Made by a program: the position numbers and the translations under genes. A DNA stretch of 64,000 nt from Chrysemys picta bellii (lineage: Eukaryota), in NCBI RefSeq assembly GCF_011386835.1, contig NC_088810.1, positions 7,564,001 through 7,628,000 on the forward strand. Direction: 5' to 3'. Below, piece after piece: positions 25,296-56,821 of the stretch. Each line of letters begins with the position of its first letter. Position 1 is the stretch's first letter. Under the pieces are notes generated by a model that worked only from the letters and a program-made list of their open reading frames with translations, did no database searches and was not told the DNA's origin.

Positions 25296-25590
25296 GCGAG
25301 CAAGCTCAGGGCTCCCGTTCCATTAGCTGACACTAGACATATGGCTGGAATATATGTAGCCGGCTCCTATATTTATTTAGCTCGGTTTCCTGTTTAGTCA
25401 ACGGCAGGCACGGACGGGGGGCGGGGGCAGCGCCAGAGAGAGAACGGAGAGCCTGGGATGCATGAGATCTTGTGAGCAAACACACAGGGATGGGCTGCAG
25501 GGAGTGGGCCGAGCAGGCACCCTGAACAACAGGGAAGTGGTTGTTACTCAGAGGGAAATTTTCATAAATATCATCAAAGGTGGAAGGAAG
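25286..25590 (-). promoter_or_regulatory. Predicted promoter and exon 1 of FFAR2-like b
   Basis: Reverse-complement homologue of 10810..11095; CATATAT box; AGGAAGTG ETS-like sites. Confidence 0.55.
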
Positions 25591-37375: not shown

Positions 37376-38637
37376 AAATCTCCTGCCTCCAGCCCACCCC
37401 AATATGGGTGAGCCGACCGTGGAGATCAGCCAGGTCTTGGAGCACCATGGATAGGGCCGGCTCCAGGGTTTTGGCCGCCCCAAGCAGCCCCAAAAAACCC
37501 AAAAACAAAAACACAAAAAGCTGCGATCGCGATCTGCGGCGGCAATTCGGCGGGAGGTCCTTCGCTCCGAGCGGGAGTGAGGGACCGTCCGCCGAATTGC
37601 CGTCGAATAGCTGGACGTGCCACCCCTCTCCGGAGTGGTCGCCCCAAGCACCTGCTTGCCAGGCTGGTGCCTGGAGCTGGCCCTGACCATGGAGAGACCC
37701 CGTCTTGTTGATGAACTCCATGGCCTGGCGTGGAGAGCAAAGTACAAGCAGATGAGTCCCATCAATGCCCCCATTTCGGGAACCCTCAACGTGCCCCTCC
37801 ACCAACAACCTCCTGAGCATCACCCTCCTGGTAGCAGCACACACCTCCATGACAACCGCCCCAGGTTTATCTACCAACCCCAAATGAGCGAGATCCTGAC
37901 CAGCAGCAATTGTGGGTGACGAATTTCCAGATGGCGACAGCCGCGCGCTTCTCCGTGCTGAGGGGAGCTCTCATATTGCTATTCCACCCCTGCAGCTCCG
38001 AGGTGAGCTCTGCGCAGATCTCTAGGGGCCTGGCCTGTCGCCCTGAAGTGCTGCCACCACACTGCTGCTCACCCCAGGATGGGTGGCCCTGTCCCACCGG
38101 TCGGCGCTAGTTGACTGAGCCCAGAAGTGGTGCCCCACCAAGTGAAGTCGCTCCCGGGAGTCCCTGGACACAACTAGCTCCTTGATTTTCCTCTCCTATC
38201 CGTATCATTGTGGCTGTCTCCAGCGCCCTCCGGCTCTGTGATGGGCAATACGCGTGCATCTGCCTGTTTGTATTACCACCAGGTTCCTGGTGCCCAGCAC
38301 GCTGCCCCATAGCCAGAGGTTTGGAAGTGGGGATGGCTTGCCAAAGCCAAGCCAGAGGACCCATCGGTCCCAGAATTCCAGGGGCATCCCACAACACGCG
38401 AAATCCCAGGAGGCATAGAGGCGAATGGTGGGAGGTTGCAGCAAGAGACGCTCTCCTGGAAGGCTGTGTGGTTATTTGGTAAGTGCGTGTCCTGCGGGGC
38501 TGTGTGGATGCAATGATTCAAAAGGGAAGTTGCTTAAGCTGGTGCAAGCCAGTGTTCACACGTTAGCTTTGGGAGAGTTATCCCTGATTAAAGCGGAAAC
38601 ACCAAACCTGAAATAACTTGCAAGTGTAGACAAACCC
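37376..38637 (-). mobile_element. Decayed PIF/Harbinger transposon with transposase remnant
   Basis: Peptides LEICAEL...NMRAPLSTEKRAAVAIWK, GAVVMEVC, GGIDGTH and SMVLQDLADLHGRLTHIGVGW (HARBI1-type DDE). TIR GTGTAGACAAACCC ends at 38637. Confidence 0.85.
37452..37685. mobile_element. hAT MITE inserted in the Harbinger ORF
   Basis: TIRs TAGGGCCGGCTCC / GGAGCTGGCCCTG; perfect TSD ACCATGGA. Confidence 0.9.
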
Positions 38638-38741
38638 TCATTTGGGAATATTCCTTCCCAGCCTTCAGTTCAGGGCTGGCAGGAACCATAACACGTCCTA
38701 GACCTGGTGGAGGTGGAACTGTGGTCCCCACCCCATCCATC

Positions 38742-39701
38742 TCACTGCACCATCTGCGAATCCTCTGTGGCTACGTTCTCCGTAGCCTCCAGCCAGACCC
38801 CAGGGCAGAGCCGGCCGAGCTGAAGCTTCTCCCAGGCGGCCTGCAGACACTCCAGGCATATCTTCTGGAAAGACGAGGAGGAGAAGTAGAAGATGATGGG
38901 GTCTAAGCTGGCATTGAAAGTGCTGAGGAGCAGGACGTAGACTCTCCACTCTGGGCTCTTATTCTCCATGTAGCCCACCACGTGGGAGATGTTGAAGGGG
39001 GTGAAGCAGACCAGGAAGAGGAGAAATGTAGCTGCCACCAGCCCGATGGCCCGGCGCTTCCTCCTGGGGTTCACCAGTGGCAGGGAGCGTATGATGGTGA
39101 TGAATCTAGCGTAGCAGAAGGTGGTGATGCCCAGCGGAAGGCAGAAGAGGACCAAGAACATCTCCAGGCGGACGGGCAGCAGGACCGCCAGCTGGTGGTC
39201 GGTGAAGGTGGCGTAGCAGCGGGTGAGGTTGCCCGCTGTGTCATTGCCCCTGGCCTGGTACTGGACCACGTAGATAACGCTGCAGTGGGAGAAAGCAGCC
39301 ACCCAGAACAAGGCCACAGCCACCACGGCGTAGGACAGCCGGCGCCCCGCCTTGTAGCGGAGGGGGAAGGCCACACTGAAGTAACGGTCAACGCTGACGC
39401 CAGTGAGCGAGAGGGTGGTAAGGTAGATGCTGCTGAAGAAGAGGAGGCCGGAGAGGGGGCAGAGGAAATCTGGCATCTTCCAGTTCATCTCCCAGGAGGC
39501 CTCGGCAATGCGGATGGGCAGGAAGGCCAGCAGCACCAGGTCGGACACCGTCAGGTTAAGGAGCAGGACGTCGGATGGCAGCAGGCGCCGGCGGGCCTTC
39601 ACCACGAAGACGCAGAAGGCCAGCAAGTTGAGGGGCAGGCCTGTCACAAAGGTCACCATGTAGACGACCAGGGAGAGCTGGGGGCTGCTGATGAAAGGCA
39701 T
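38742..39701 (-). CDS. FFAR3: Free fatty acid receptor 3-like GPCR (319 aa)
   Basis: GLPLNLL, LPIR (R2.60), CPLSG, PVRLEM (M5.42), SHVVGY, WRVYVLLLST; Kozak CCCACCATG. Lies between FFAR1 and FFAR2 as in mammals. Confidence 0.85.
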   Translation of the reverse strand: MPFISSPQLSLVVYMVTFVTGLPLNLLAFCVFVVKARRRLLPSDVLLLNLTVSDLVLLAFLPIRIAEASWEMNWKMPDFLCPLSGLLFFSSIYLTTLSLTGVSVDRYFSVAFPLRYKAGRRLSYAVVAVALFWVAAFSHCSVIYVVQYQARGNDTAGNLTRCYATFTDHQLAVLLPVRLEMFLVLFCLPLGITTFCYARFITIIRSLPLVNPRRKRRAIGLVAATFLLFLVCFTPFNISHVVGYMENKSPEWRVYVLLLSTFNASLDPIIFYFSSSSFQKICLECLQAAWEKLQLGRLCPGVWLEATENVATEDSQMVQ

Positions 39702-39922
39702 GGTGGGAAGAAGGGGGTGGCAGGGGCTGGGTTGACAATAGCAACCAGGGATCCACTAGGCCTTGGGATGGGAATGGAGATGGAGATGGGTTACCAATAG
39801 CAACGGGGGACCCACCAGGCCTTGGGTAGGGCTGGAGGCGGGGTTCCCGCAAGGCTCATTCACTGCAGAGAAAGGAGAGACAGGTGGGGTTAGCGAGCCC
39901 CCTTCGAGATCAGTCCTTAGAC

Positions 39923-40145
39923 CAGTGGTTCTCAAACATTTTTACTGGTGATCACTTTCACATAGCAAGCGTCTGAGTGTGACCCCCCCCCCTTACAAAT
40001 TAATAGCACTTTTTATATATTTAACACCTTTGTAAATGCTGGAGGCAAAGCGGGGTTTGGGGTGGAGGTTGACAGCTCGCGACCCCCCATGTAATAACCT
40101 CGTGGTCCCCTGAGGGGTCCCGACCCCCAGTTTGAGACCCCCCTG
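39923..40145. mobile_element. hAT (Charlie-like) MITE
   Basis: TIRs CAGTGGTTCTCAAA / TTTGAGACCCCCCTG; TSD not intact. Confidence 0.7.
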
Positions 40146-40989
40146 GACAAACTCCCTGGAGCCGGGGAGCAGCTCTTGGCTCTGTCTGTGCAGCGCCTGG
40201 TGCAGCAGGGTCCCGGGGCACCTGGGTGATACTGTAACGCATCTAAATAGCACTAATAACGTACAGCACCTGGCGTATGGGGGGTCCTGGGCCAGGGCTG
40301 GCGGCCCCTCGATCCTGACCACAGTACAGATATTACTCATCATTCCATTTGGTAGGAAACTTTCAAAAGCACTGACCCCGCCCCCTTCCACTCAGAACTT
40401 TGTTTTCTGAGTGACTGTTTTGAAAGTTTTTTCCAAGAATTTGGAGCAAAAAACCCCAAACCGCCCTCACACTTTGTCTCAGTCTCTGCCCCCTCCCTTT
40501 CTTTTTTATTCCCCCACCTCAAAAAAGAGAGTGGAAAAATTACAACAGTGAGTGAAAGTGGGGAAATAAGAACACTTTCACTCTCCCGCCCCCTTTTATC
40601 TCACTGGGGAGAAAATTGCAGATTCATGGATTCCAAGGCCCAAAGGGACCATTACGGTCATCCAGTCCCACTCTGAGCAGCGCCCAATCCAGGACCCCAC
40701 GCTGGGGGTCCGGCCATCAGTCACGGATCACTCTCTCTCTAAGGCAGCGAGCCCCTGGGCCCAGGGCCCCACGGCGCCTCAGCCCATCTTGACCCCGCCT
40801 TTCATCTCCACTCCAGCACTCTAAGATGTTTACATTGTTCCCGGCCTGGAGCGAAACTGTTAGTGTTCCCCAAGAACTGCTATAAATCCTCCCGGCCAAC
40901 AGCTTGACGTCTCTCCCCACCGCGTTATGGCAGGAACGCCGAGTGTTCCACCTTCCTACGTCTCACCTCTAGGGAGCTCTGGTTACTCA

Positions 40990-41280
40990 GGACCCCTGGG
41001 GTCTATCCCCAGCTCTCTGAGGGCAATGGAGTCTAGTGGTTAGAGCAAGGAGGCTGGGAACCAGGACTCCTGGGTTCTTTCCCCAACGCTGGGAGAAGAG
41101 GGGTTTAGTGGTTAAAGCAGAGGGCTGGGAACCAGGACTCCTGGGTTCTTTCCCCAACGCTGGGAGAAGAGGGGTTTAGTGGTTAAAGCAGAGGGCTGGG
41201 AACCAGGACTCCTGGGTTCTCTCCCCAGCTTTGGGGGGGACGGGTCTAGTGGTTAGAGCAGGGGAGGCTGGGAGCCAGGA
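40990..41280 (+). repeat. Tandem tRNA/MIR-head-derived units (representative of dozens in the window)
   Basis: ~70-75 bp units with A-box-like GTCTAGTGGTTAGAGC and B-box-like CCTGGGTTCTWTCCC. Confidence 0.7.
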
Positions 41281-43405
41281 CTCCACGACAGCCACACCTG
41301 TGCCCGGGTTAATGGCCCTGCCAGACAAAGAGCAATGGGCAGATGCTCCCAGCATTCTGTGTGGGCCAAGTGAGCACCATACTCCTGGGGCGGTGGCCGG
41401 GGAGCCAGCCTGTCCCCCACCCTGGGGCCAGATCGGAGCTGGTGCCTCCTAGAGCGGGAAAGGCCCCGTGTCCCATTCCCACCCATCTCTGCTCTGGTAA
41501 ATCAGGGAGAGATATAGATAGGGTGTATGGGGATGGATAGGTAGAGGGGATGTATGGGACTAGATGGATGGATGGGGGTGGGTGTTTGGGGACAGACAGA
41601 CAGATAGATAACCTCAGTGCAGTTCCTTACCCCATGTCCAGCTCTGATTCTCTACTGGACCAGATCTCGGAGCACAGTGGATCTCTCCTCTTGCCCTGGC
41701 TGGGTAACTCAGCCTCCTGTCCGGGGCAGGGTTGATGTGACAGCTGATAAGGAAAACACTTTGGAGCCCAAAATAAACCTAGGTGTGGGTGTTTCAAGCA
41801 GCATTGGTGGGGCAGGAAGAGGTGACCTGAGCACCAAAATAGACACCCTGTTTTCTGTAGCTGCCGCTGACATCTGCACTGGGAAACTCCCCGGCTCCCT
41901 GAGAGGGGAGAATTTGTCTGTTCAACCACTAGACCCCACTCCCCTCCCAGAACTGAGGATAGGACCCAGGAGACCAGACATGCAGCCCCCACTGCTCTAA
42001 TCCCTAGACCCCCCTCTTCTGCCAGTGTCAGCCTCCCTGCTCTAACCACTAGACCTCACTCACCTACCAGAGTTGGAGCTAGAACCCAGGAGTCCTGCCG
42101 CCCAGTCCCCGCTCCTTTCTAACAAAAGGCACTTCCCCTGAGCTATAGGAACCGAAGTCAGGTCTCCTTTTCCTGGTTCCTTTTCCTACTCACTGGAGCA
42201 GTGTCTTGCACCCTCAGCTGTCCTGATCTGGATCAGCCCCTAGACCAGTATCCCTGCCTGGCCAGCCAATGGGCACAGGACGGACGGCTGGGAGCCAAGC
42301 TCTGGACTCTGCATGGACCCCCTCCCCGACCAGAACTGGGGCCTACTGCCAGGCACTACACAGACACCCAGCAAGCATCTAAGAGATGAGCACCCCAAAC
42401 TTGGAAGGCTTAGAGGTGGTGGGGTATGGGGCACAGGGCCTTTCCCTTCCAGGGGGTGCTGCCTCCCATCCGGCCCCATGCCCGGTGGACTGGCAGGTTT
42501 GCGGGGGCAGGCAATGGGGCACGGGGCCTTTCCCCTTTAGGGGGTGTCAGCTCCGATCTGGCCCCAGGGCCGGGAACTGGCAGGTTTTTTGAGGGGGGGG
42601 GGGGCAGGGAATGGTGCATGGGGCCTTTCCCCTCTAGTTTTCCTCTAGTGGCTCACAGACCAACTCTCCCTCCCCCTGCCAGTGTCCCGGGTCACAAAGC
42701 ATCGCTGGGCCCTCGGAAACCGCCCTCCGCGCTTGCTGGCTGAACTGGAGAGACAGCAACGGGTGAGGCGCTAGGCAAGACCTGAGCAACCAGGGCAGAG
42801 TTGGGGTTACTGGCCCCGGAGTCCCCAGTGCAGGGCTCCCCTCCCCAGACACCTATCCCCCTTCCCTCCTCCCCAAACTCTGACCCCTTGTCAACTGCAG
42901 CTGGCTACAAAGCTTAGGCAAAGAGGGAAATTGTGGGTGGGGCAAGCCGGTAGTTACAGGGGAGCTGCGACAGTTTCAAGGAGCCCAGAGCCCTGAGCTC
43001 CCTTGACAGTTTCTAGAGACCCTAGAGATAACCAATGTTTGTAGGGAGCCTGGAGCCTAGAACCGATAGTTTTGAGGGAGTCCCGAGCCCTCCGTGATTG
43101 TGCTGAGGGAGCCCAATCATCCCTGTGGTGATTTCAGGGAAGCCCAGGGCTCAACCACGTAATTTCTAGAAACCCAGCCCTGCTTCCCCTCCTAGAGTTC
43201 CTAAGAACCCCAGTTCCTGCTCTGGACAGTTTCTAGGTACCCAACCACCCCTCCACGGGCCCGCAGCAATTTCCAGCCGCGCCTCCAAACCACAGGGACG
43301 CCTGGCGGTTTTAAGCAACTTCTGCTTTTGCAGAGCCCTAAAGTGGAACCAAAGGGGGGGGGGAGGGAGGAGAATGAAGGGGGGGTGGATTGGTCCAGAT
43401 CTTCC

Positions 43406-44499
43406 TGTGACGCTCTGTAGCTCGTGGGAACACCCTACACCCCCATGTTCATCTTTATAAAATGATTGTGTGGTATCCAATGCAACGTTTGTCATGTCGG
43501 ATTTCTTCAGAAGGCTCATGACGCACTGAGCATTGTTGTTCTAGTGATGTTATAGGAATTGTTGTTACAGTAATGTTATAGTGGTGTTATAGGTTATAAT
43601 TTAATGTATATAGTTATGAGGCTGAAAATGTATCCTTGTAATTTAAAACAAGGCAAAAACTCTTCAAAAGCAGAGAGGCAGTTCACACCTCATCAGGGCA
43701 GGCATGGGACAAACCCAGCCCAGCCTCACAGGAACAAAGAACACTGGCTAGACAGTGACAAAAGAATCAGTTAGACCCTCGAGGGAGTCACCCCCTTCCT
43801 TTGGTCAGTTTGGGGCTGCGATGGGGTAATGCTCACCTGACTCTGAAGGGAGTGGGGCAAAGCCAAGAGGGAAGAAAGGACATGATAAAAGGGAGAGACA
43901 TTTTGCCATCCTCTCTCTCTTCCACCTCCATCTACAGACACCACCACCATCAAGCGACTGAAGCGCTGATCAAAGGGGAGAGCCTGGCTGAAGAGCAACC
44001 AGCCAGCCTGTGGTGAGAAGCATCTAAGGTTGTAAGGGCATTGAAAGTGTTAAGATCAGCTTAGAATGCGTTTTGCTTTTATTTCATTTGACCAAATCTG
44101 ACTTGTGCTTTGACTTATAATCACTTAAATCTACTTGTTTGTTCTACCTGGAGCCGTGCGTTTGGTTTGAAGCGTGTCAGAGACTCCCCTTGGGATCACA
44201 AGCCTGGGACATATCAATTTATTTGTTACATTGGCGAACTCATATAAGCTTGCAGCGTCCAGCGGGCATAACTGGGCACTGCAAGATGGAGGTTCCTAGG
44301 GTTGTGTCTGGGACCGGAGATATTGGCTAGTGTCATTCGGTGGCACAATCCAAGGAGCAGCTGACATGCCAGAGGCTGTGCGTGACCAGCCCAGGAGTGG
44401 GGGTTCTCACAGCAGAGCACGGTAAGGCTGGCGCCCAGAGTCAAGGATGGGAGTGACCTAGCAGATCACCAGTCCAGATAACACCAGGGGAACGTCACA
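43406..44499. mobile_element. Solo LTR
   Basis: TGTGACG...CGTCACA termini; layout similar to 23990..25087. TSD not clean. Confidence 0.75.
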
Positions 44500-44591
44500 C
44501 CATCCCCTCCCAGCAAGCTGCAAAACTGCTGAGCTCTGCACAGCGGGAATGTGGTCTAGGCCAAGGGGTTGGGCAATACAGTTCTCATCTG

Positions 44592-44605
44592 CTGCCACCT
44601 AGTGG
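44592..44605 (-). promoter_or_regulatory. CTCF consensus site between FFAR1 and FFAR3
   Basis: Minus strand reads CCACTAGGTGGCAG, a full match to the CTCF core. Confidence 0.6.
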
Positions 44606-44859
44606 GCAGAGGGGAGACTGGCAGGTGTCTGGTCATTGATTCTCGCCTGCCAGGGCGTGTTGGACGGGCAGCGCTGAACCCAGGCCGAGGGGCAGCTGGG
44701 CCAGGCTCAGAGACCGAACGGGGCAATCGGAACTAGGAAGGGAGAGGCTGCATCGGCTGCACCTCCCGCTGGGCCCTTCTCCCCATTTAGACAGAGGGAA
44801 CCTGAGGCACAGAGCGAGGCAGGGACTTGCCCAGGGTCACACTGGCAGCTGAGAATAGG

Positions 44860-45100
44860 ACCCAGGAGTCGTGGCTCCCAGGCCCTCCGCTCTAACCACT
44901 AGGCCCCACTCCCCTCTTATAGCTGGAAATAGAACCCTGGAGTCTTGGCTCCCAGCCCCCCTGCTCTAACCACTAGGCCCCACTCCCCTCTTATAGCTGG
45001 AAATAGAACCCAGGTGTCCCAGCTCCCCCACTCTAACCACTAGACCCCACTCCCCTCCCAGATCTGGGAATAGAACCCAGGAGTCCTGGCTCCCAGCCCC
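44860..45100 (-). repeat. Tandem tRNA/MIR-head-derived units
   Basis: Three to four ~70 bp units, AGAACCCAGGAGTCCTGGCTCCCAG...CTCTAACCACTAG. Confidence 0.7.
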
Positions 45101-45211
45101 TGCACTGTGCTGTGAGTGCAGCACACCCATTTCAGCGGGGGCCTGGTCTCAGTCGAATGATAACTACAATAACGATATTAATAATAACGACCCCACTGGA
45201 GCTGGGAAAAC

Positions 45212-45217
45212 TTTATT
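45212..45217 (-). terminator. Candidate FFAR1 poly(A) signal AATAAA
   Basis: First TTTATT I found on the + strand downstream of the FFAR1 stop; implies a ~1.2 kb 3'UTR. Confidence 0.5.
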
Positions 45218-46376
45218 GATTAAATCAGCACGGATCCGTTAGTGGAATGCAATTTACAGCCAGTGGGCAAAAGAGTCAGCGCTAGGGTGGAGTGGTGAGA
45301 CCCCTGGGTGATCCCGATTGGCCCCAGCTGGGATCCGGCCCCATTGCCTCTGTTCCTACTAACTCATTGCTCAGTCCTGGGACATTCTTGCAGGAGCTGG
45401 GATTTCATTGACAGGAGATTTAGGATTCCCGCTGATTGTGGTTTGGAATATTTCTACGTCCAAGTTACACAGACCTCCCAGTTACCTCGGACATATCTCT
45501 AGCACCTTCCATACACAATGGGTAGGAATCATGGCCTCAGTGCCAAAATGCAGCCACCTCTGGGGCGGGGCAGCTGGGGAGCAGCCACACGGGGATGGCT
45601 CACCTGGTGCTGAGATGCAGCCACCTCTGGGTCAGGGCAGCTGGGGAATAACTGCACAGTGACACCTCATAGGCTGGCTCACCCAATGCAGACCTACAGG
45701 ACGGAGTTTAGTCTATTCCCCCAGTAGCAGAGTAAGCCGTACAGTCTATTTCGCCCTAGGGGGGCGAGGGGGTCTGGATCATCTTCTATATCCAATTCTC
45801 CCAAGGCAGGATCCGTCCCATGGGGGTACAAAATGAGCACAAGAAATCTGGACCCTGCCATCACACCCCGCCTGGCATCTCCTCACCCCCCATCCCAGCC
45901 CAGTCAGGGATGTCCCCATCCTAAGGGGTCTTTCAAGACCACCAATGGTCAAGGTCATGACCATGCACTCATGTCTCAGTGGAAAACTGCTACCTCACCC
46001 CCTAGTCCTGTCAAAACCAGACACCTCCTTGTCCTAAGGGGGATATGTACTGACCCATGGATAGGCCAGGTTCTTGGACTCACGTGCCATCCAAGGTCGG
46101 AGACTACTAGTCCCATGGGGATTCTGTAAAGACCATGAATTTCCCGGTCCTTTGTCTTATGTCCTATCCAAGATCGAAGGTTCCGGGTGCCGTGGAGAAT
46201 CTGTAATGGTCATGAATTTCCCGGTCCTTGGTCCTGCGTCCTATCCAAGATTGGAGGCTCCCAGCCCCATGGGGAATTTTTAAGGTTCATGAGCAGCCGG
46301 GTCCCACAGCCCATCCAAGATTGCCAATCTCCCCGAATCCTGTCCCAACAGCGTTTGGTGTCTCCTTGTCTCATGG

Positions 46377-47363
46377 TCACTTGGAGCTCCCCACCCCGGG
46401 GCCTGTACTTCCCTGTGATGCAGCCCCCTTCTCAGGCTGCCCCTTGCCTGCCTCCCTGTGACCCATGGTCATCTTCTGCCGGAAGGAGCTGCAACGCTGC
46501 CCCACGGAGCGCCACACCCAGGCCAGGCCGTGGTCCTTGGCCGAGGAGAGGAAGTAGAAGATGAGCGGGTCCAGGAAGGCGTTGCAGGCACCGGGCAGCA
46601 GCGCCACCCTGCGCCACCAGATGTCCTCGCCGCGGGCGTAGCCCACCACGTGGGACAGGTTATAGGGTCCGAAGCAGAGCACAAAGACAGAGAGCGTGGC
46701 CAAGGCCAGCCGCACCGCCCGGCGCTTCTTCTGCTCGTGGAGACGGGACTTGACGAGGACATGGATGCAGCCGGCGTAGCAGAAGACCGTGATCACCAAG
46801 GGCAGGAAGAACAGGGCCACGGAGAGCTCCAAGCGGACAGGAGCTAGCAGGGCCAGCTGCTCTGGACTGAATTCCTGGTAGCAGGCGGTGCCGTTGCCCA
46901 TAAAGAGGGTGGCGTTGGCGCCCAGCGAAGTCTCCAGGATGAGCAACAGGACGCCGTGAAAGGCCACCAGGGTCCAGATGGCCACACAGACCAGGCAGGA
47001 GTAAAGGGGCTTCTTGTAGAGCTGGTAGCGGATGGGGAAGGCGGCGCCCAGGTAGCGCCCGGCACTGACCGCCGTCAGGAAGCAGGTGCTGGCGTAGAGC
47101 GTGCCGAAGTGGGCCAGGCTGTAGAGAGGGCAGAGGAAGCTTGGTGGGGACCAGCCGGGTGGAACCACCTCCAGGATCTTGAGTGGCAGGATGAGGACGA
47201 AGGCCAGGTCCGAGATGCAGAGGTTGATCATGTAGATGAGGTTGGGGGTGAGGCGGGTGCGGGCGCGGCGGTAGAAGATGTACAGCACCAAGGTGTTGGC
47301 GGGCAAGCCCAGCAGGATGGTGACCGAGTAGACGGCCAGGGCCAGGGTGTCCAGCGGGTCCAT
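46377..47363 (-). CDS. FFAR1: Free fatty acid receptor 1 (GPR40) orthologue, 328 aa
   Basis: FFAR1 signatures RARTRLTPNLIY, LPLK, SAGRYLGAAFP (GRY instead of DRY), FCYAGC and LLPGAC; strong Kozak GCACCATGG; first gene of the cluster in transcription order. Confidence 0.88.
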   Translation of the reverse strand: MDPLDTLALAVYSVTILLGLPANTLVLYIFYRRARTRLTPNLIYMINLCISDLAFVLILPLKILEVVPPGWSPPSFLCPLYSLAHFGTLYASTCFLTAVSAGRYLGAAFPIRYQLYKKPLYSCLVCVAIWTLVAFHGVLLLILETSLGANATLFMGNGTACYQEFSPEQLALLAPVRLELSVALFFLPLVITVFCYAGCIHVLVKSRLHEQKKRRAVRLALATLSVFVLCFGPYNLSHVVGYARGEDIWWRRVALLPGACNAFLDPLIFYFLSSAKDHGLAWVWRSVGQRCSSFRQKMTMGHREAGKGQPEKGAASQGSTGPGVGSSK

Positions 47364-47444
47364 GGTGCCGGCTCAGCGGGGGGTGGAGGAGGGAGGCATC
47401 TCAGCTGGGGCTGGAATGATAACAAGGATGATCCCCCTTCACCG

Positions 47445-48272
47445 TGTCCCCTAGATCCAGCCCCCCATCCCTGCCCCACATCCCCTCAATCCATACCCCA
47501 GATCCCTGCCTCACGGCCCATCCCCTAGATCCACCTCCACATTCCTGCCCCACAGCCGCATCCCCTAGATCCACCCCCCATCCCTGCCCCACGTTCTCTA
47601 GAGCCACACCCCAGATCCCTGTCCCACGACCGCGTTGCCTAGATCCATCTCCACATCCCTGCCCCACGACCACACCCCCTAGATCCACCTCCTCATCCCT
47701 GCCTCATCATTACATCCCCTAGATCGACCCGCCCCCATCCCTGCCCCATGACCATGTCCCTTCGATCCACTCCCATCCCTGCCCCATGGCCACATCTCCT
47801 AGATCCACCCCCCATCCCTGCCCTACGGCTGCATCCCCTAGATCCACCTCCACTTTCCTGCCCCATGTCCACACACCCTGGATCTACCCCCAGTCTCTGC
47901 CTCATGGCCACGTCCCCTAGATCCACCCCCATCCCTGCCCCATGACCATGTCCCCTCGATCCACTCCCATCCCCGCCCCATAGCCGCGTCCCATAGATCC
48001 ACCCCCAGATCCCTGCCCCACGACCATGTCCCCTCGATCCACTCCCATTCCTGTCCCACGGCCGCGTCCCCTAGATCCACCTCCTCATTCCTGCCCTACG
48101 GCCGCATGTCCTAGATCCACCCCCAGATTCCTGCCCCATGGCTGTGTCCCCTCGATCCACCATGATCTTTGCCCCATCACTGCATCCCCTAGATCCACCT
48201 CCATGTCCCTGCCCCATGGCCGCGTCCCCTAGATCCCCCCCCCCATCCCTGCCCCATGGCCACATCCCCTAG
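47445..48272. repeat. ~39-40 bp VNTR (~21 units), G-rich on the FFAR1 sense strand
   Basis: Recurring CCCCTAGATCCACCCCCATCCCTGCCCCATGGCCACAT-like unit. Confidence 0.9.
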
Positions 48273-48454
48273 CTCCTACCTCTCTGGCTCAGCTCCCCAC
48301 ACCTGTGCTCCCGCCCGGCCTGGCTCCAGGGACGTGGCGAGCTGCTGTGCCAGCAGTCGCTGGGGGCGTGGATCAGCCTGCTCCCAGGTGGGATGAAATT
48401 GCCCAGAAGGAATTGTTCAACCAGGGCAGCTTCATCCCCCGGCTACGTGGCTGG

Positions 48455-48470
48455 GCCATAAAGCCATAAA
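48455..48470. promoter_or_regulatory. Tandem CDX/posterior-HOX motifs GCCATAAA x2 in the predicted FFAR1 promoter
   Basis: GCCATAAAGCCATAAA read directly; function inferred. Confidence 0.4.
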
Positions 48471-49269
48471 AACCCGGGGAGGCGCAGGGGGCCGCCCTGC
48501 CCCACGGGCCCTTCTGCCTCGTGCCCCCCAGCTGGAGCGACTGAGAGGGAGAGAACGGCCGCCGAGACGGGGGCACGGCTGGATTATCCCCCACGGGGAA
48601 TGGATCCCTCTGTGTGGACCCGGAGCTGGGACCCCGAAGTAGGACAGACACCCAGCCCCGCAATGTGACCCGATAAATGGGACTCGCCCCCTCATCCTGG
48701 GAGGAGATTTTCCCCACTTCAGAGGCAGCTGCCGCTCATCAATCCCTGCGTGGCGGTTTCCTAGCTGCCCCGCACCAGAGGTGGCTGCATCTCAGTGCTG
48801 GGTGATCCATCCCCATACAGAGTCGCTGTGTGGCTCTTCCCCAGCTGCTCCGCCCCAGAGCTAGACGCATTTCTTGGGGACTCCTTTAAAAGCAGCTGGA
48901 TCCCCCCCTTGTTAGTGACAAGCAGCATAGCATGGCATTCAGGTGTGCTACAGGTGCTTTCTACCAACTGCCAACGGAGTGGTTTCTCCTAGCGCCAGAG
49001 CCGAGGCTAGAACCCAGGAGTCCTGGCTCCCAGCCCCGCTGCTGTCAGCCCATCAGTTGTCAGGGCCTGTTATTTTGATGGCTGATACAAAGCTCAGTGA
49101 GCGAACTCCCCCGAGATCCCTATCGCTCTGCTTGTTTCCGTGACTCTGTGGTATTTCCGCTGGGAGAGATAATGTGGTTTTAGAGACACACAGGAAGGCA
49201 AGGTCAACTCACTAGAGTGAATTGCTCCCTCTGAAGTGCTGCTGCAGGAAACCCCCAGCATGATCTCAT

Positions 49270-49760
49270 GACAGAGCTGGCTGCATCTCAGGCCCAGCGA
49301 GCTGTCCCCATGTGGCGTTATGTGCGGCTGTTCCCCAGCTGCCCCGCCCCAGAGGTGGCTGCATCTCAGCACCAGGCTAGGCCTCCCCACGCAGTGTTGT
49401 GTGCAGCTGTTCCCCAGCTGCCCCACCCCAGCACTGTTCCCCAGCTGCATATCAGCACTGAGCGAGCCATCCCAAGCGGCGTTATGTGCAGCTGTTCCCC
49501 AGCTGCCCCGCCCCAGAGGTGGCTGCATCTCAGCGCTGGGTGAGCCATCCCCATACGATGTTATGTGCAGCTGTTCCCCAACTTCCCCACCCCAGTGGTG
49601 GCTGCATCTTGTAGTCGGTCAAGGTGTCCCCATGTGGCGTTATGTGTGGCTGTTCCCCGGCTGCCCCGCCCCAGAAGTGGCTGCATCTCAGCACCAAGCT
49701 AGGCCTCCCCATGCAGTGTTGTGTGCAGCTGTTCCCCAACTGCCCCACCTGAATCTCAGA
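49270..49760. repeat. Degenerate tandem repeat (CAGCTGCCCCGCCCCAGAGGTGGCTGCATCTCAG family)
   Basis: Several direct copies; related copies at ~48760 and, inverted, at ~45540. Confidence 0.7.
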
Positions 49761-51039
49761 GTCCGTCAAGGCATTCCCAGCTGCCTCACCCCTTACAGGC
49801 ATGAAGTCACTCACACCCACACCATAGCAGGAAACTGAGGCACGGGTTAGAGAAGGACAGAATGGAGGAGAACCCAAGCGTCCAGATTCCCGGCTTCCCC
49901 TGCTTTTAACCCAGCAAGCTTGCATTGTGCTGGGGTATCAGGGCTAGCCCTGACTGCCAGGGGAGAGCCCCCACCCTGCCCCCTGCAGCACAGCGCCCCC
50001 TAGTGCTGCCCTGGGGCCTTGGGGCCAGCCCTGGCTGCCAGGGAAGAGCCCCCACTCCCCCCCACACACATACCCTGCAGCACAGCACCCCCAAGTGCCA
50101 CCCTGGGGCTTTGGGGCCAGCCCAGACTGCCAGAGGAGAGCCCCCATCCCACCCCCTGCAGCACAGCGCCCCCTGTGCCACGCTCTGGCATTGCATCCCC
50201 TCGTACAGGACGCACAGATCTCTCAAATAAATACAGCTCCTGGCAAATGCTCATAGATCAATTTATTTCTTTTCCTGCTGTGGCAGCTGCGCCGGTTTCT
50301 CTTGGCAGCGGGGGCCGAACGCTCCGGTGCTTTCCAGCTGAGAGCTGTTTACAGAACTTGCTATTTGACCAGTTCCTGCTGCAGTTAATAGCCTGTAAAG
50401 TATTTTTATTGCTGATCCTACGGCGGGAAGAGATGCCAATTACATCCCTGATTCCTCGTGCCAGGCGCGTGCTGGCCCAGGCACTTGTTAATCAGAAAGG
50501 AAAGCACTGAGTGACTGCATGCGGCTGTCCCCTGGCTGTCCCACCCCAGAGCTGGCTGCATCCCAGCACCGGATGAGCCGTCCCCGTGCAGCGTTGCTGT
50601 GAAACAGACACTGCTCATAAACATTTCAGGGAGCATTGCAAATCCTTCCCCCTCCCCCCGCAATTAGATCTCACTCCCCTCCCAGAGCTGGGGATAGAAC
50701 CCAGGAGTCCTGGCTCCCAGCCCCCCCCCGCTCTAACCACTAGACCCCACTCCCCTCCCAGAGCTGGGGCTGGAACCCAGGAATCCTGGCTCCCAGCCCC
50801 CGCACTCCAACCTATAGCGCACTAGAAAAGCTACAGAAGGTTGATCCGGCTCATCCCCTAGCACCCAGGGAGGAGGGGGGGACTTGGCCAAACCCACAGC
50901 CTGTGGGCCTCAGGAGGGTCGCCGTGCTGGGGGCCTAAACCTCAGGGGGCAGCACCTGGAGAGTCCCGGGGATAGCTGGGTGGGGGGGTAACCAGGGAAA
51001 GCACCCCCTGCTGCAAACAGGTGTGTCCTACAGCCAGCC

Positions 51040-51095
51040 GGGGAAGTGTGTGTGTCCCTGCTGCCCCCTGCTGGCTGGAACACCCCATCCCTTGC

Positions 51096-51140
<45 letters not shown>

Positions 51141-51253
51141 GCTGCCCCCTGCTGGCTGGAACACCCCATCCTTTGCCGTGTGTGTGTGCGTGTGTGCGTG
51201 TGTGTGTCCCTGCTGCCCCCTGCTGGCTGGAACACCCCATCCCTTACTCTGTG
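51040..51253. repeat. (GT)n-containing ~60-80 bp tandem repeat running into the gap
   Basis: Three copies of GTGTGTCCCTGCTGCCCCCTGCTGGCTGGAACACCCCATCC. Confidence 0.85.
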
Positions 51254-51753
51254 NNNNNNNNNNNNNNNNNNNNNNNNNNNNNNNNNNNNNNNNNNNNNNN
51301 NNNNNNNNNNNNNNNNNNNNNNNNNNNNNNNNNNNNNNNNNNNNNNNNNNNNNNNNNNNNNNNNNNNNNNNNNNNNNNNNNNNNNNNNNNNNNNNNNNNN
51401 NNNNNNNNNNNNNNNNNNNNNNNNNNNNNNNNNNNNNNNNNNNNNNNNNNNNNNNNNNNNNNNNNNNNNNNNNNNNNNNNNNNNNNNNNNNNNNNNNNNN
51501 NNNNNNNNNNNNNNNNNNNNNNNNNNNNNNNNNNNNNNNNNNNNNNNNNNNNNNNNNNNNNNNNNNNNNNNNNNNNNNNNNNNNNNNNNNNNNNNNNNNN
51601 NNNNNNNNNNNNNNNNNNNNNNNNNNNNNNNNNNNNNNNNNNNNNNNNNNNNNNNNNNNNNNNNNNNNNNNNNNNNNNNNNNNNNNNNNNNNNNNNNNNN
51701 NNNNNNNNNNNNNNNNNNNNNNNNNNNNNNNNNNNNNNNNNNNNNNNNNNNNN
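51254..51753. other. Assembly gap, exactly 500 N
   Basis: Counted directly. A round size suggests a scaffolder join of unknown true length. Confidence 0.98.
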
Positions 51754-53234
51754 CGTAGCTAAAGCCACTGCCCCTGGGGGGCGCCAGATCTGCCAGCGAA
51801 GGGAGGAGGTGCAGGACCTTGCGCGAGGGAGATCTCAGCTCTATGTCCAGACCTGGAACAGACCCGCAGGGACCAGTGTCCATTGTACGTGTGCCTGCTA
51901 AACGCCCATCCCCCACCCACCTGGAGGATAACAGCCCTACTACCGCTGTAAAAGGCACTCCGCTTTTAGATCACGTGAGCCCGTCACTGTGGTGCTGGAA
52001 GTCCTGCGTTCAAATCCTTGTTAATAACAGCCTGTTCCCACTGCTGCTACCAAGCGGCGCGGGCCCTTCCGCTTGCACCGTGCATTGATGGTGAAGGTCC
52101 AGAGTCCAAATCCTTCCCATCCACATGGCAGATAATAGCCTTACTACTGCCGCCAACACATGGCACTGCTACTTTAGCTCAAGCAGTAGCGTGCTGGGCT
52201 GTAGCCTCTTGAGTTCCAGTCCCACCAAGGCAGTAACTACATTTCCACAGAGGCCAACACACACTAATAATAGTGGCCAAGGAGGAGGAGTTCTCCATAG
52301 CTTAACAAGGGCAAACTCGGGGTCCACAGGCCCCTCACGGAGCCTGGTCCTTGTTCATCTGCCACTAAATGGTTCCCCTGAAATGGGACCTGCTCATCCC
52401 AGCCTGTTTGCCCTCCCTCAAGCAACCTCCACTTGGTTCTCCCCTTGCAGTTACAGCCCATAGTAGCTTGTTTGCCCGTGGGCCCAACCATGGGGAAGGA
52501 AAGACCTGGAGTGGGTGGACAGTGATGAAATAGGCCAACCACTTATGTGCCAGCAGTGGCAAAGGAAGGCCCTTGACGCCATGGCGACCCTGACACTGAG
52601 AGAGGCCGGATCTTTGAGGAAGTTGGGCCACTCACTCCAAAGCTGAAGTAGGCCAAAGTCTGGGGGGGCGCTTGGCCAACTGCTCGTGGCCAGGGCAAGG
52701 ATGGACCGTGGCCCCAGCCCTCGCTCTGCCCCAAGGCCCAGCCCCTGCTCAGCCTCTTCTCCCCTGAGGCCCCGCCCGCCACTCGCACCGGGTGTAAGGG
52801 GTGGAGAGGACTGAAGCGGGGGGAAGCTGGGGAGGGGGTGGAGAGGAGCTAACAGTGAGCAATGGCTCTAGAGGAACAGGCTCAGTGGGGCACGGGGGGG
52901 GCTCAGGCTCCAGCAGGGGGGTGGGGCCAAAGTCCCAGCACCAGGGCCCCTTCTAAGTGTGGGCCCGCTCCCGTTGACGCCATTGTAAACCCGGTACTGC
53001 TCATGGCCCGGCAGCGGAAAAGGAAGGACCTTGACCCCAACTGGAGGTCGGCCAAACCCCTGTGCAAGTTTGGCCAACCACACTGAAGCTCAGGTAGGCC
53101 AAAGCCATGTGGAAGTTGGGCACCAACTCCAAGCCCCGCCGCACGCTGCTGTCTGAGGAGGCCTACGGCCCTCTCGGGAGGTGCAGGGAAGGACAGAAGA
53201 TGCCGTCCCGGGCTCAAGTGCAGGATCTCTTGTT

Positions 53235-54271
53235 TAGGGTTACCATATTTCAGCAAGCAAAAAAGAGGACGGGAGGAGCCCCACCCCTGTCCTGCCCCTG
53301 CCCCTCCCACTTCCCGCCTCCCCAGAACCCCCAACCCTCCCCCCGTTCCTTGTCCCCTGACTGCCCCCTCCTGGGACCCCTGCCCCTAACTGCCCCCCAG
53401 GACTCCACTCCCTATCTAAGCCTCCCTGCCTCTTGTCCCCTGACTGCCCCAACCCTTATCCACACCCCCACCCCCAGACAGACCCCTGGGACTCCCACGC
53501 CCCATCCAACCACTCCCCACCCCCTGACAGCCCCCCCCCCAGAACTCCCAACCCATCTAAACCCCTCTGCTCCCTGTCCCCTGACTGCTCCGATCCATCT
53601 CCCCACCCCTGCCACCTGACAGCCCCCCCCCAGAACTCCCAAACACCCCCCCCGCTCCTTGTCCCCTGACTGCCCCCTCCTGGGACCCCTGCTCCTAACT
53701 GCCCTCCAGAACCCCACCCCCCACCTAAGACTCCCTGTTCCTTGTCCCCTAACTGCCCCCTCCTAAGACCCCCCCCAACTGCCCCCCAGGACCCTACCCC
53801 CTACCTGTACCCTGACTGCCCAAAACTTTCTCCACTCCCCCCAAAAAGCCCCCCCCAGTTTCTTGACTGCCCCCTCCAGAACCTCCCTGCCCCCTGACCT
53901 CCTTACCCTGCTGCTCAGAACAGAGTGTTGGGCTCTGTGCAGCCGAGCCGGACACGTGGCTGAGCTCCCCAGCACAACAAAACCCGGTCCCTGGCCCTGC
54001 ACAACAAAACCCGGTCTGGCCCTGCACAGTGCTGCCGGACTGGGCTGCAAGGGAGCTGCCGGCTCAGAATGCAGGGCGGATCCGGCTCCTCTACAGCTGC
54101 TCCGGAGTCCAGCCCGGGACTTCCCTGCAGCCCTCCCAGCCGCTCACTCTGCTCTGCCGGGGGAGGGGGAAATCCCGGACATTGTGAGTGCTTTACAAAT
54201 TCCCCCCGGACGCTATTTTTAGCACAAAAAGGAGGACATGTCCGGGTAAATCCGGACGAATGGTAACCCTA
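53235..54271. mobile_element. hAT non-autonomous element (1037 bp) in the predicted 3'UTR of copy b'
   Basis: TIR TAGGGTTACCAT; TSD CTCTTGTT/CTCTTGCT; single CTCTTGCT at the empty site (~22739). Confidence 0.92.
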
Positions 54272-54343
54272 CTCTTGCTCCTGCGGTGCATGGGACAAGG
54301 AAGGCTCTGCGGAGGAAGCAGAGAGTCAGTCTCATCCTGGGGG

Positions 54344-55339
54344 TCAAGTCGTCGACTCCTCAATCACGTTCTTACTGGCTGCCTTCAACTCGCTGCCCCC
54401 TTCTCCGCAGTGAGTCAAGCAGGGGAGATGGCACCGGGACAAGATGGTGTTAAGTTTATGCCACAGGGTGGCCAGGCAGTTGGCGAAGGCCCTTTGGACG
54501 GCAGTGGAGGAGAAATAGAAGATGGCGGGGTCCAAGGCGGCATTGAGCGTGCTGAGGAGAAGAGCGTACACCCTCCAGGAGGGGCTCTTCTTCTGGACAA
54601 AGCCCACCACGTGGGACAGGTTGTAGGGGGCGAAACAGACTATGAAGTTGAACAAGGTAACCAGAGCCAGGCCTACGGCCCGCTGCTTCCTCCGGGCCGA
54701 GATGTTGGGCAAGGCCACCAGGATGCGGACGAGGTTGACGTAGCAGAAGATGGTGACGGCGAAGGGAAGGCAGAAGAGGACGACGAAGAACTCCAGACGG
54801 ACAGGGAGCAGGATCTGGCGCTGCGTAGGGGAGAAATGTTCATAGCAGTTGGACACGTTTTTGGAAGTCGCAGTCCCATTGGGGCTCAGGACCTCGTATT
54901 GGACAATGTAGACGATGCTGCAGTGGGCGCAGATGATCAACCAGAAGACCACGGAGGTGGCGATAGCATATGCTGGACGGCGCCGGAGCTTGTACTTGAT
55001 GGGAAAGGCCACCCCCAGGTAGCGATCAACGCTGACGGCCATGAGGAAGAAGGAGCTGATGTAGATGCTGTTGTAGTAAAAGTAGTTGGTGAGTGGGCAG
55101 AGGAAAGCAGGCAAGGGCCACACCATGCCTGAGGCAGCCTCCGCCATCTTGAAGGGGAGGAAGATGAGGAGGAAGATGTCGGAAACAGTGAGGTTGAGGA
55201 GAAGGATGTCGACGGGGGTGGGTTTTTGGCGGACCTTCACCAGGAAGGTGTAGAAGGCCAGAAGGTTGGACGGGAGGCCGGTCAGGAAGGTGAAGATGTA
55301 GACAGTGAGAACCAGCGGGATGTAAACATTTGAACTCAT
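54344..55339 (-). CDS. FFAR2: FFAR2-like GPCR, copy b' (331 aa); recent paralog or alternative haplotype of b
   Basis: Intact ORF; 9 nt differences from copy b by manual count, 4 of them changing amino acids. Confidence 0.8.
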   Translation of the reverse strand: MSSNVYIPLVLTVYIFTFLTGLPSNLLAFYTFLVKVRQKPTPVDILLLNLTVSDIFLLIFLPFKMAEAASGMVWPLPAFLCPLTNYFYYNSIYISSFFLMAVSVDRYLGVAFPIKYKLRRRPAYAIATSVVFWLIICAHCSIVYIVQYEVLSPNGTATSKNVSNCYEHFSPTQRQILLPVRLEFFVVLFCLPFAVTIFCYVNLVRILVALPNISARRKQRAVGLALVTLFNFIVCFAPYNLSHVVGFVQKKSPSWRVYALLLSTLNAALDPAIFYFSSTAVQRAFANCLATLWHKLNTILSRCHLPCLTHCGEGGSELKAASKNVIEESTT

Positions 55340-55522
55340 CTTCTCAGCTCCTTCAAAGGAGAAAAGGCTCATCAGCTGCCAAAGGAACCCAGGAGTCCTG
55401 GTAGTCAGCCCCCTCCTCCTCCAACCCACTAGATCCCACTCCCCTCCCAGCAGTGGGGATAGAACCCGGGAGTCCTGGCTCCAGCCCCCTCTCCCTCCAA
55501 CCCACTAGATCCCACTCCCCTC

Positions 55523-56613
55523 TGTGGCACTCTGTACCCCAAAGCAACACCTTGGAACCCCGTATTCACCAATGTCACATGATTATCTTATGTGTGATAC
55601 AAAGAATGCATGTGAGATATCATATGAAAGGTCATGATCTGCTGAAACCCATTGTTCTGTCCAAATATGTGTATCTTTAGTGTGCATGAAGTTATAAGAT
55701 TTTACTGTTTTGTTGTCAATGAAATATGTTGTAAGTTTGAAAGTCCTTCCTACAAGGGTGGTGACCCTCTCCCAGGTGGGCGTTCACTGGCCATTCATCA
55801 ACAGGGGTGTTGCAATCAAGGGATTTACAATTCAATGACAGTTGCAGAAGCACCACACAATGGGGGATTTACTTGGTCACTGTGACTCAGCAAAGCCCAT
55901 CAGGACGGGTCTTGGTATTAAGAGACAGAGGCTGCATGGCTTGGCCTTTTCTCCTCCCCCACCTACGCTGCAAGGACTCTGAGAAGAGAGAGAACTTCAG
56001 CAGAGGAGACAAGGGAGAAACCTGTGTATTGTGAACTGTAACATCCATTGAGTGGAGAAAACTGCTAGATCTAAATACTGCCTAGTGTCTTAGAGGTTGA
56101 AGTTTTAGACTAGACACTTAGTTTCTTTTCTTTGGTAACTATCTCTAACTTTTATGCCTACCACTTATAATCACTTAAACTCTCTCTATCTGCAGTTAAT
56201 AAATCTGTGTTATACTTTATCTAAAACAATGAATTTTGCTTGAAAAGCTTGGAAATCTTAGCTCAGTTAACAAAAGGCGTGTGCATGTCCTCCCCACATC
56301 GAGAGGCCCGGGGCGAGGGGGACGGGCTGGGCAAAGAACTGACACTGCTCAGGCTTCTGACCAATGCAGGATGGTACAGCTCCAGGGTCCTAGGTTGGGG
56401 AGAATTGGCTTTTTGGTTCGTGAGTGGCTGAGGGCAGCATTTCATGTAACTCGGCTGGGTGTGTCCCTGCCTGGGGATGGCTGTGTAAGTCCAGTACCTG
56501 CCAGACGTTTGTTGCTTGTCACAGCATCACAGTGTGAATGGGAGTCCAGACTGGTGGGGCAGAGGACTCAGGGGTATCTGAGTTCCAGGTTGCACCCCAG
56601 GGATCGTGTCACA
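55523..56613. mobile_element. Intronic solo LTR, counterpart of 23990..25087
   Basis: TGTGGCA...TGTCACA; TSD CCCTC. Confidence 0.9.
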
Positions 56614-56811
56614 CCCTCCCAGGCCTGCAGATAGAACAAAGGAGTCCTGGCTCCAGGCCCCCTGTTCTAATCCACTAGATCCCACTTCCCTCCCTGAGCT
56701 GGTAGAGTACCAGGAGTCCTCCTCCTAGACCCTCCACTCAAACTCTTACATGCCCCTCCCCCCAAGTCATGTGGCCAGAACCCAGGAGTCCTGGCTCCCA
56801 GCCCTCCTTAC

Positions 56812-56821
56812 CCGTAGCCAT
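56812..56821 (-). CDS. Predicted 10-nt first coding exon of FFAR2-like b'
   Basis: ATGGCTACGG|GTAAG, identical to copy b; in frame with the acceptor at 55350. Confidence 0.5.

Follow-up and report, generated by a model that had tools for sequence, protein, structure and literature searches.

FFAR1 (GPR40) is a diabetes drug target, and the basis of chain-length selectivity among the free fatty acid receptors FFA1 to FFA3 is now under study (2024-2025 structures). In FFA2, the extracellular loop 2 (ECL2) tyrosine beside the disulfide cysteine hydrogen-bonds butyrate, Cys4.57 (Ballesteros-Weinstein numbering) touches the ligand's last carbon, and a His4.56-Glu5.41 pair draws transmembrane helix 4 (TM4) toward TM3, narrowing the cleft, which is wider in FFA1 with its Ser5.41 (PMC10780892). 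The FFA2 mutation C4.57G extends the response to C5-C8 acids (PMC3509056; the chain-length effect is reported also in PMC10780892), and Gly4.57 under the Arg/Arg/His cradle of FFA2 shifts preference to these acids (PMC3509056). FFA1 has a lateral TM3-TM4 membrane opening lined by P3.26, V3.27, V3.30, G4.58, and F4.61; FFA2 is closed there by L3.27, F3.30, T4.58, and I4.61, its opening lets palmitate activate FFA2, and these lateral gate residues determine the chain-length class (PMC11947310). In fish, ffar1 of rainbow trout and gar was earlier placed by phylogeny (PMC10029227). Here, we report a gene in a 64,000-nucleotide stretch of turtle DNA (the window) that is likely a functional FFAR1 ortholog with an ancestral pocket, and most likely a carboxylate (free fatty acid) receptor, as judged from its sequence.

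Receptor gene

The turtle FFAR1 ortholog is an uninterrupted 328-amino-acid (aa) open reading frame (ORF), running from ATG to stop, with a Pfam 7tm_1 match (126.5 bits, residues 23-268) that marks a full-length rhodopsin-type G protein-coupled receptor (GPCR).

46377..47363, minus strand: single-exon coding sequence (CDS) of the turtle FFAR1 ortholog, an intact ORF with Pfam 7tm_1; stop codon at 46377-46379
45200..46376, minus strand: probable 3' untranslated region (tentative), from contigs of four probable RNA runs

The product is 99% identical to a database protein of Chrysemys picta bellii ("free fatty acid receptor 1-like"), and synonymous divergence from the Chrysemys CDS is 0.016; the gene is already annotated in public databases, under inconsistent names, and is not a new kind of system. 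Ratios of nonsynonymous to synonymous substitution (dN/dS) of 0.17 against Chrysemys and 0.32 against Pelodiscus indicate that it is under purifying selection. Across five turtle genera, the ORF length is constant at 328 aa (identity, 82 to 99%), and every anchor residue and class A microswitch is retained in the turtle receptor (residue table). Contigs from four small runs (one study) tile ~45.2 to 47.4 kb, that is, the CDS and ~1.1 kb downstream, more sparsely upstream of the start codon; the tiling is suggestive of a transcript. Separately, contig depth reaches hundreds to thousands in all four runs at 44800-45200 and 48900-49700, with many joints linking both places; these are interspersed repeats on either side of FFAR1.

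Orthology

With synteny taken into account, the gene is very probably the ortholog of mammalian FFAR1. CD22, turtle FFAR1 (adjoining the CD22 3' end), and the next FFAR gene (FFAR3-like) follow one another on one strand in the chromosome-level Chrysemys and Pelodiscus assemblies, and the tammar wallaby order is CD22, FFAR1, FFAR3 (downstream ORF 88% identical to koala FFAR3). On the minus strand of the window, the order FFAR1, FFAR3, FFAR2 is that of the mammalian cluster. Collinearity between the window and the Chrysemys chromosome spans 36316-51253 (DNA identity, 94 to 98%) and runs only up to an N gap at 51254; CD22 lies outside the window.

Raw scores against solved structures are highest for FFA2 (221 bits), followed by FFA3 (198 bits) and FFA1 (195 bits). 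Against human FFA1, the FFAR2 ortholog of the window reaches 144 bits and its FFAR3 ortholog falls below the 1e-40 cut-off, so that turtle FFAR1 is displaced toward FFA1 relative to FFAR2 and FFAR3 of the same genome. A reciprocal word search from wallaby FFAR1 ranked a turtle ortholog (198 bits) above any full-length protein of FFAR2/3 type (155 bits at best). Because the raw score is nearer to FFA2 than to FFA1, the case for FFAR1 identity is made by synteny, the tree, and a small number of shared derived residues. The sequence-only reading had called this identity clear: the orthology stands on those three grounds, but overall similarity is higher to human FFA2.

A maximum-likelihood (ML) tree was built in IQ-TREE (LG+C20 with posterior mean site frequencies) from 61 rows, comprising 15 non-mammalian FFAR1, 8 mammalian FFAR1, 32 FFAR2/3/third-clade, 2 lamprey, and 4 outgroup sequences; alligator and long fish rows were omitted. 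Therian FFAR1 was nested in the turtle and squamate clade (ultrafast bootstrap 99, Shimodaira-Hasegawa approximate likelihood ratio test 99), and the entire FFAR1 clade, including amphibians and a teleost, received 100/99. A 103-row tree agreed, with therian FFAR1 placed among the amniote members of the turtle gene's clade and a shark FFAR1-like sequence also grouped with FFAR1. FFAR2/3 fall in the opposite half of the family tree from turtle FFAR1, which has Gly3.49 and Gly4.57. Both ML trees thus place the gene inside the FFAR1 clade, as had been supposed from the sequence; the alternative in an approximately unbiased (AU) test (p = 0.104) is weighed below. Turtle branches are short in the 61-row tree. 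The therian FFAR1 stem measures 2.36 substitutions per site, and ~0.4 separates the turtle gene from the amniote FFAR1 node. The 103-row tree also grouped alligator with mammals, which was treated as a long-branch/compositional artefact because both are rich in Gly, Ala, Arg, and Pro (GARP). Neither monotreme FFAR1 nor mammalian FFAR2 proteins were among the matches listed.

Receptor motifs

Ballesteros-Weinstein numbering was checked on a 300-aa primate FFAR1 (C79, H86, Y91, H137, C170, R183, Y240, N244, and R258 at the published human positions). Motifs were compared by alignment with FFAR1, FFAR2, and FFAR3 sequences, human FFA2 via PDB alignments only.

47052..47060, minus strand: GRY motif, Gly102-Arg103-Tyr104 (Gly at 3.49), common to the whole FFAR1 clade; E/D-R-Y in FFAR2/3
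46953..46958, minus strand: pocket floor, His136 (4.56) and Gly137 (4.57); His-Leu (Leu138) in mammalian FFAR1, His-Cys in FFAR2/3
46827..46883, minus strand: C-terminal arm of ECL2 and start of TM5, with Cys161, Tyr162, Phe165, Arg177 (5.39), and Glu179 (5.41), from alignments
46650..46664, minus strand: TM6 Tyr234 (6.51) through His238 (6.55), PYNLSH motif; Asn244 in eutherian FFAR1, His in FFAR2/3
46611..46613, minus strand: Arg251 (7.35), second carboxylate-anchoring arginine, aligned with FFAR1 R258 and FFA2 R255
46551..46574, minus strand: TM7 LDPLIFYF motif, Asp265 at 7.49, as in FFAR2/3; LNPLV(T/S)GY in therian FFAR1

The motifs picked out in the sequence-only reading (GRY, RLTPxLxY, CYxGC, LxxGA type, and LDPLIFYF) were all found in the alignment, with RLTPNLIY in TM2, FCYAGC in TM5, and LLPGAC in TM7; so were its His at 6.55, its Gly at 4.57, and its ECL2 spacing, which was counted as 16 from Cys161 to Arg177 (5.39). 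FFA2 (C164-R180 in human) and FFA3 share this 16-residue spacing; therian FFAR1 has 13 (C170-R183), together with Leu171, Trp174, and Ser5.41. The carboxylate anchor is complete (Arg177, Arg251, Tyr234, and His136, with disulfide cysteines Cys78 and Cys161). FFAR1-clade residues are present at Gly102 (3.49), His85 (3.32), Ser181 (5.43), and C195-Y-A-G-C199, where FFAR2/3 have E/D, F/Y, A/F/C/G, and CYxx(L/F). The mammalian-type pocket markers (Asn6.55, Ser5.41, spacing 13, Leu171, and Trp174) are absent, their places being taken by His238, Glu179, 16, Tyr162, and Phe165. A pocket of FFAR2/3 type had been proposed from the sequence; that description holds for the ancestral-like features common with FFAR2/3, but the pocket is a mosaic, since His3.32, Ser5.43, Leu4.61, Gly7.42, and Ala7.43 are of FFAR1 type.

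Mammalian FFAR1 (human FFA1; 4PHU, 8EJC, 8T3V) occupies the same slot after CD22 and before FFAR3, falls in one ML clade with the turtle receptor, and is 41 to 44% identical to it. The two share Arg5.39, Arg7.35, Tyr6.51, His4.56, Tyr3.37, and Glu at 4.64 (E145), as well as clade-specific Gly3.49, His3.32, Ser5.43, and TM5 CYxxC. Beyond the ECL2 arm (16 against 13) and Tyr/Phe for Leu171/Trp174, the turtle receptor has His6.55 (eutherians Asn; marsupials His), Glu5.41 for Ser, Gly4.57 for Leu, Val4.58 for Gly, Leu3.27 and Leu3.30 for Val, DPLIFYF for NPLV(T/S)GY, and a C-terminal tail of ~55 aa where the mammalian one is very short; its gene also evolves far more slowly.

FFAR2/GPR43 (human FFA2; 8Y6W, 8J24, 8T3S) gives the top raw score and the best model fit (Z ~34, root mean square deviation [rmsd] ~1.5 Å), and has in common with the turtle receptor the cradle of Arg5.39, Arg7.35, His6.55, Tyr6.51, and the ECL2 Tyr by the disulfide Cys, the ECL2 spacing, the His4.56-Glu5.41 pair, Val5.38, Leu5.42, and DPxxFYF. 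It belongs to a different clade, however, and separate FFAR2 orthologs are encoded elsewhere in the window (one at 330 bits to human FFA2). Further differences are Gly3.49 (not Glu/Asp), His3.32 (not Phe/Tyr), Phe3.33 (not Tyr), Gly4.57 (not Cys; bovine FFA2 also has Gly), Leu3.30 (not Phe), and Glu at the position of ECL2 Q148. Bovine FFA2 and human FFA2 C4.57G (Hudson et al. 2012, PMC3509056) likewise place Gly4.57 under an Arg/Arg/His cradle, but in another paralog and among other surrounding residues. The fish "ffar1" sequences (trout and gar, PMC10029227; Lates and shark FFAR1-like) share the FFAR1 clade, Gly3.49, and the two arginines with the turtle gene, and Lates also the 16-residue ECL2 arm and His6.55; their branches are much longer (1.6 to 2.1 substitutions per site), and the shark sequence differs in Gln6.55, Asn7.49, and a large ECL2 insert. 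In the Chiloscyllium punctatum FFAR1-like protein (P0132), Gln6.55 and TM7 LNPLV are independent mammal-like states, accompanied by a long repetitive ECL2 insert.

Ancestral and derived states

Five markers (6.55, Cys-Arg5.39 spacing, 5.41, 7.49, and 3.49) were scored in all retrieved sequences, with states given where readable; 61 non-mammalian orthologs were retrieved (turtles, squamates, and amphibians), 43 of them readable at all five.

Non-mammalian FFAR1: His at 6.55; spacing 16 (one shows 15); Glu at 5.41; Asp at 7.49; Gly at 3.49
Marsupial FFAR1 (n = 9): His at 6.55; spacing 13; Ser at 5.41; Asn at 7.49; Gly at 3.49
Eutherian FFAR1: Asn at 6.55; spacing 13; Ser at 5.41; Asn at 7.49; Gly at 3.49

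The lamprey outgroup has spacing 16, His6.55, and Asp7.49. Polarity was counted over columns in which each of three groups showed a 70% majority: 53 were invariant, 5 were FFAR1 synapomorphies, 25 were derived in mammals (non-mammalian FFAR1 agreeing with FFAR2/3), and 1 was derived in non-mammals. That the FFAR2/3-like traits of turtle FFAR1 (the long ECL2 arm, His6.55, TM7 DPxxFYF, the long C-terminal tail, and the His4.56-Glu5.41 pair) are ancestral states, common to non-mammalian FFAR1, is well supported by these comparisons; the mammalian receptor would have been remodelled on the therian stem, with His6.55 turning to Asn later, in eutherians. The earlier suggestion of an ancestral-like FFAR1, with the mammalian receptor derived, is borne out by the 25 columns against 1 and by the long therian stem; the FFAR2/3-like pocket proved to be no peculiarity of this gene, the same states occurring in all readable non-mammalian orthologs retrieved.

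By the distribution of states, Asn6.55 arose in eutherians only; it is a poor marker of long-chain sensing, because all nine marsupial FFAR1 sequences keep His6.55. The therian stem need not be all adaptive, because part of it is a shift to GARP-rich composition. The literature searched held no prior statement of a uniform FFA2/3-type cradle, ECL2, and TM7 in non-mammalian FFAR1, nor of marsupial His6.55 retention or of near-total divergence on the therian stem.

Predicted pocket and ligand range

An AlphaFold2 model of turtle FFAR1 (pLDDT, 87) fitted FFA2 structures (Z, 32.5 to 34.1; rmsd, 1.3 to 1.7 Å) better than FFA1 structures (Z, 29.8 to 31.1; rmsd, 2.1 to 2.4 Å), despite slightly higher aligned identity to FFA1. 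Arg177 (5.39), Arg251 (7.35), Tyr234 (6.51), His238 (6.55), and ECL2 Tyr162 would anchor the acid head group, as in FFA2/FFA3. The gate residues are Pro79 (3.26), Leu80 (3.27), Leu83 (3.30), Val138 (4.58), and Leu141 (4.61), with Gly137 (4.57) below; the set is intermediate, with larger side chains than FFA1 at three positions and a smaller one than FFA2 at 3.30. Read against the published determinants, the prediction is mixed, namely, an FFA2-like cradle with an enlarged floor and an equivocal lateral gate. Since anchor and entrance would be FFA2-like, the TM3-TM4 cleft probably tighter than in FFA1, and the floor enlarged by Gly4.57, a preference for short-to-medium chains (roughly C4-C10), as the sequence-only reading suggested, might be expected, rather than for the long chains that reach the human FFA1 pocket sideways from the membrane; we regard this preference as evenly poised between true and false.

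A broader reading, which we advance tentatively and hold to be somewhat less than probable, is that non-mammalian FFAR1 would be a short-to-medium chain carboxylate receptor on an ancestral pocket, and long-chain sensing by FFAR1 a therian innovation that arose in one remodelling burst. The remodelling on the therian stem would have comprised the loss of three ECL2 residues, Glu5.41 to Ser, a one-position move of the glycine in TM4 (4.57 to 4.58), and a rewritten TM7, with His6.55 to Asn following later, in eutherians.

Alternatively, the FFAR1 ortholog may already sense long-chain acids as mammalian FFAR1 does; the FFAR2/3-like residues would then not set chain length, and the remodelling would have changed coupling, allosteric sites, or composition. 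We take this seriously, while placing it short of an even prospect. Both arginines and Tyr6.51 are conserved, the pocket and gate carry small or FFAR1-type side chains (His3.32, Gly4.57, Leu4.61, Gly7.42, Ala7.43, and Ser5.43), marsupial FFAR1 has His6.55 in an otherwise mammalian pocket, and the mammalian divergence is partly compositional. The barrier between chain-length classes is low, because just three gate mutations make FFA2 palmitate responsive (PMC11947310). Against long-chain sensing stand the Glu5.41 and His4.56 pair, reported in FFA2 to narrow the TM3-TM4 cleft, Val4.58 in place of the FFA1 Gly, Leu3.27 as in FFA2, an ECL2 length and Tyr162 that match FFA2, and a model backbone nearer to FFA2.

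Several observations count against a turtle FFAR1 ortholog that works as a short-to-medium chain receptor. Leu at gate position 3.30 lies between Val of FFA1 and Phe of FFA2, and Gly3.34, Gly4.57, Leu4.61, Gly7.42, and Ala7.43 are small or FFAR1-type pocket residues, smaller than in FFAR2/3; because of these residues, a lateral opening and long-chain binding are possible. No receptor pharmacology for fish, amphibian, or reptile FFAR1 was found in the literature searched, the expression evidence consists of contigs from four runs whose RNA status was guessed, and a dN/dS of 0.32 is somewhat high for a GPCR. As to the tree, mammalian FFAR2 sequences are absent from it, and mammalian FFAR1 is deviant in composition (GARP, 0.33 to 0.42 versus 0.27), which could affect its placement. 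In the AU test, a tree that sets mammalian FFAR1 apart from every other FFAR was not rejected (delta lnL, 13.7; p = 0.104), so that non-orthology is possible on sequence alone.

Other explanations

That AU result is one argument for taking the turtle gene as a distinct ancient FFAR paralog that mammals lost and fish, amphibians, and reptiles retained, with the true FFAR1 lost outside mammals. Raw similarity, higher to human FFA2 than to FFA1, points the same way, as do the inconsistent NCBI names within the clade (FFAR1-, 2-, 3-, and GPR42-like) and the mention of a coelacanth/amphibian/reptile "new subtype" in PMC6504862. Such a history would nevertheless require reciprocal losses at one slot, between CD22 and FFAR3; the two groups are complementary in distribution, and neither yielded a second candidate; therian FFAR1 is nested in the amniote clade of the ML trees (99/99); and Gly3.49, His3.32, Ser5.43, and CYxxC are held in common with mammalian FFAR1. 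The "new subtype" clade stands in the trees as a third group of its own, within the FFAR2/3 half and without turtle FFAR1, and identity of the turtle gene with that "FFAR2#" subtype was therefore rejected. We judge a separate paralog improbable and retain orthology with mammalian FFAR1.

The sequence-only reading also noted a 21-nucleotide identity with one FFAR2 copy (FFAR2b) over the SHVVG codons, to be explained by constraint or micro-conversion. An exact match is present, but its length is 22 nucleotides, and the other copy (FFAR2a) is identical too.

46640..46661, minus strand: 22-nucleotide identical stretch, N-L-S-H-V-V-G codons, equal to 23068-23089 (FFAR2b) and 14444-14465 (FFAR2a)

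Micro gene conversion among cluster members has in its favor this exact match to both copies and the proximity of the genes, which lie <35 kb apart in a cluster with recent duplication. When synonymous codons were resampled from the gene's own usage, however, an in-register run this long or longer appeared in ~7% of trials (P ~0.07), and the Pelodiscus ortholog and the FFAR3-like gene of the window use the same core codons (TCC CAC GTG GTG GGC). Preferred codons coincide because GC content at third codon positions is 0.81 to 0.89; there is no tract of raised identity around the match, and the next longest matches are 12 to 13 nucleotides. Protein constraint and codon bias would be sufficient for the 22-nucleotide identity, and conversion is very unlikely.

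Decay of turtle FFAR1, or loss of its fatty-acid function as apparently in archosaurs, would fit the dN/dS of 0.32, the alligator ortholog without Arg7.35, Tyr6.51, and part of ECL2, and the lack of a bird ortholog among the matches listed (chicken is without FFAR1 per PMC4453067), but is scarcely credible given the 328-aa length kept at 82 to 99% identity in five turtle genera, the retained anchor residues and class A microswitches, the short turtle branches, and the probable transcript contigs.

Neighboring genes and other FFAR lineages

The window contains five FFAR-type ORFs, of which those other than FFAR1 are as follows.

13658-14719, plus strand: FFAR2 ortholog (FFAR2a)
22811-23896, minus strand: FFAR2 ortholog (FFAR2b), 330 bits to human FFA2
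38742..39701, minus strand: FFAR3 ortholog, downstream neighbor of FFAR1; best PDB match human FFA3 (306 bits); FFAR3 clade 100/97
54344-55429, minus strand: fifth FFAR-type ORF (FFAR2b copy), in the duplicated block after the N gap

Collinearity with Chrysemys stops exactly at the 500-N gap (51254-51753), where Chrysemys has the CD22 3' end. Beyond the gap lies a 98.5 to 98.9% copy of 21265-32473 (FFAR2b and a retroelement), with ~1 kb of extra sequence at 53.2 to 54.3 kb; the 51254-64000 block is more suggestive of a scaffolding misjoin or a retained haplotype than of a settled duplication. Two near-identical 370-aa ORFs with a GIY-YIG nuclease domain (26503-27615 and 58029-59141, both plus strand; the first inside the duplicated block) presumably belong to a Penelope-like retroelement. 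A reverse-transcriptase fragment ORF (RVT_1) lies at 31094-31969 (plus strand), and the GIY-YIG and RVT_1 ORFs are all between FFAR genes.

The alligator ortholog (P0127 / P0270, Alligator mississippiensis "FFAR1-like") is highly diverged (46% identity; branch, 1.8), with His for Arg7.35, His for Tyr6.51, Ala for Cys6.47, a partly deleted ECL2, and no FYF motif. No bird FFAR1 ortholog was among the matches listed, and chicken has been reported without FFAR1 (PMC4453067). In archosaurs, FFAR1 seems to be undergoing decay or to have been lost. An FFAR3 ortholog does exist in birds (Grus and Gavia "FFAR3-like"; P0131, P0271, and P0272); its branch is long and groups as sister to that of the turtle FFAR3-like gene. 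In chicken, an older paper reportedly did not find FFAR3.

A third FFAR clade, not in the window, was recovered from sharks, coelacanth, lungfish, amphibians, turtles, and squamates (P0062-P0070, P0075, P0080, P0086, and P0095). It branches beside FFAR2 and FFAR3, with no mammal or bird members recovered, and is probably the "likely new subtype FFAR2#" of PMC6504862.

Implications

The slowly evolving non-mammalian FFAR1 may serve as a natural intermediate, being FFAR1 by descent with an FFA2/3 cradle, a long ECL2, and a glycine in the pocket floor. If the turtle receptor were found to respond like human FFA1, it would simply be an ordinary ortholog. The findings call for caution in transferring the "long-chain receptor" label and mammalian agonists (TAK-875 and GW9508) to fish, amphibian, and reptile "ffar1," and the non-mammalian receptors offer a testable hypothesis for when long-chain sensing may have arisen and which of ~25 mammal-specific changes would matter.

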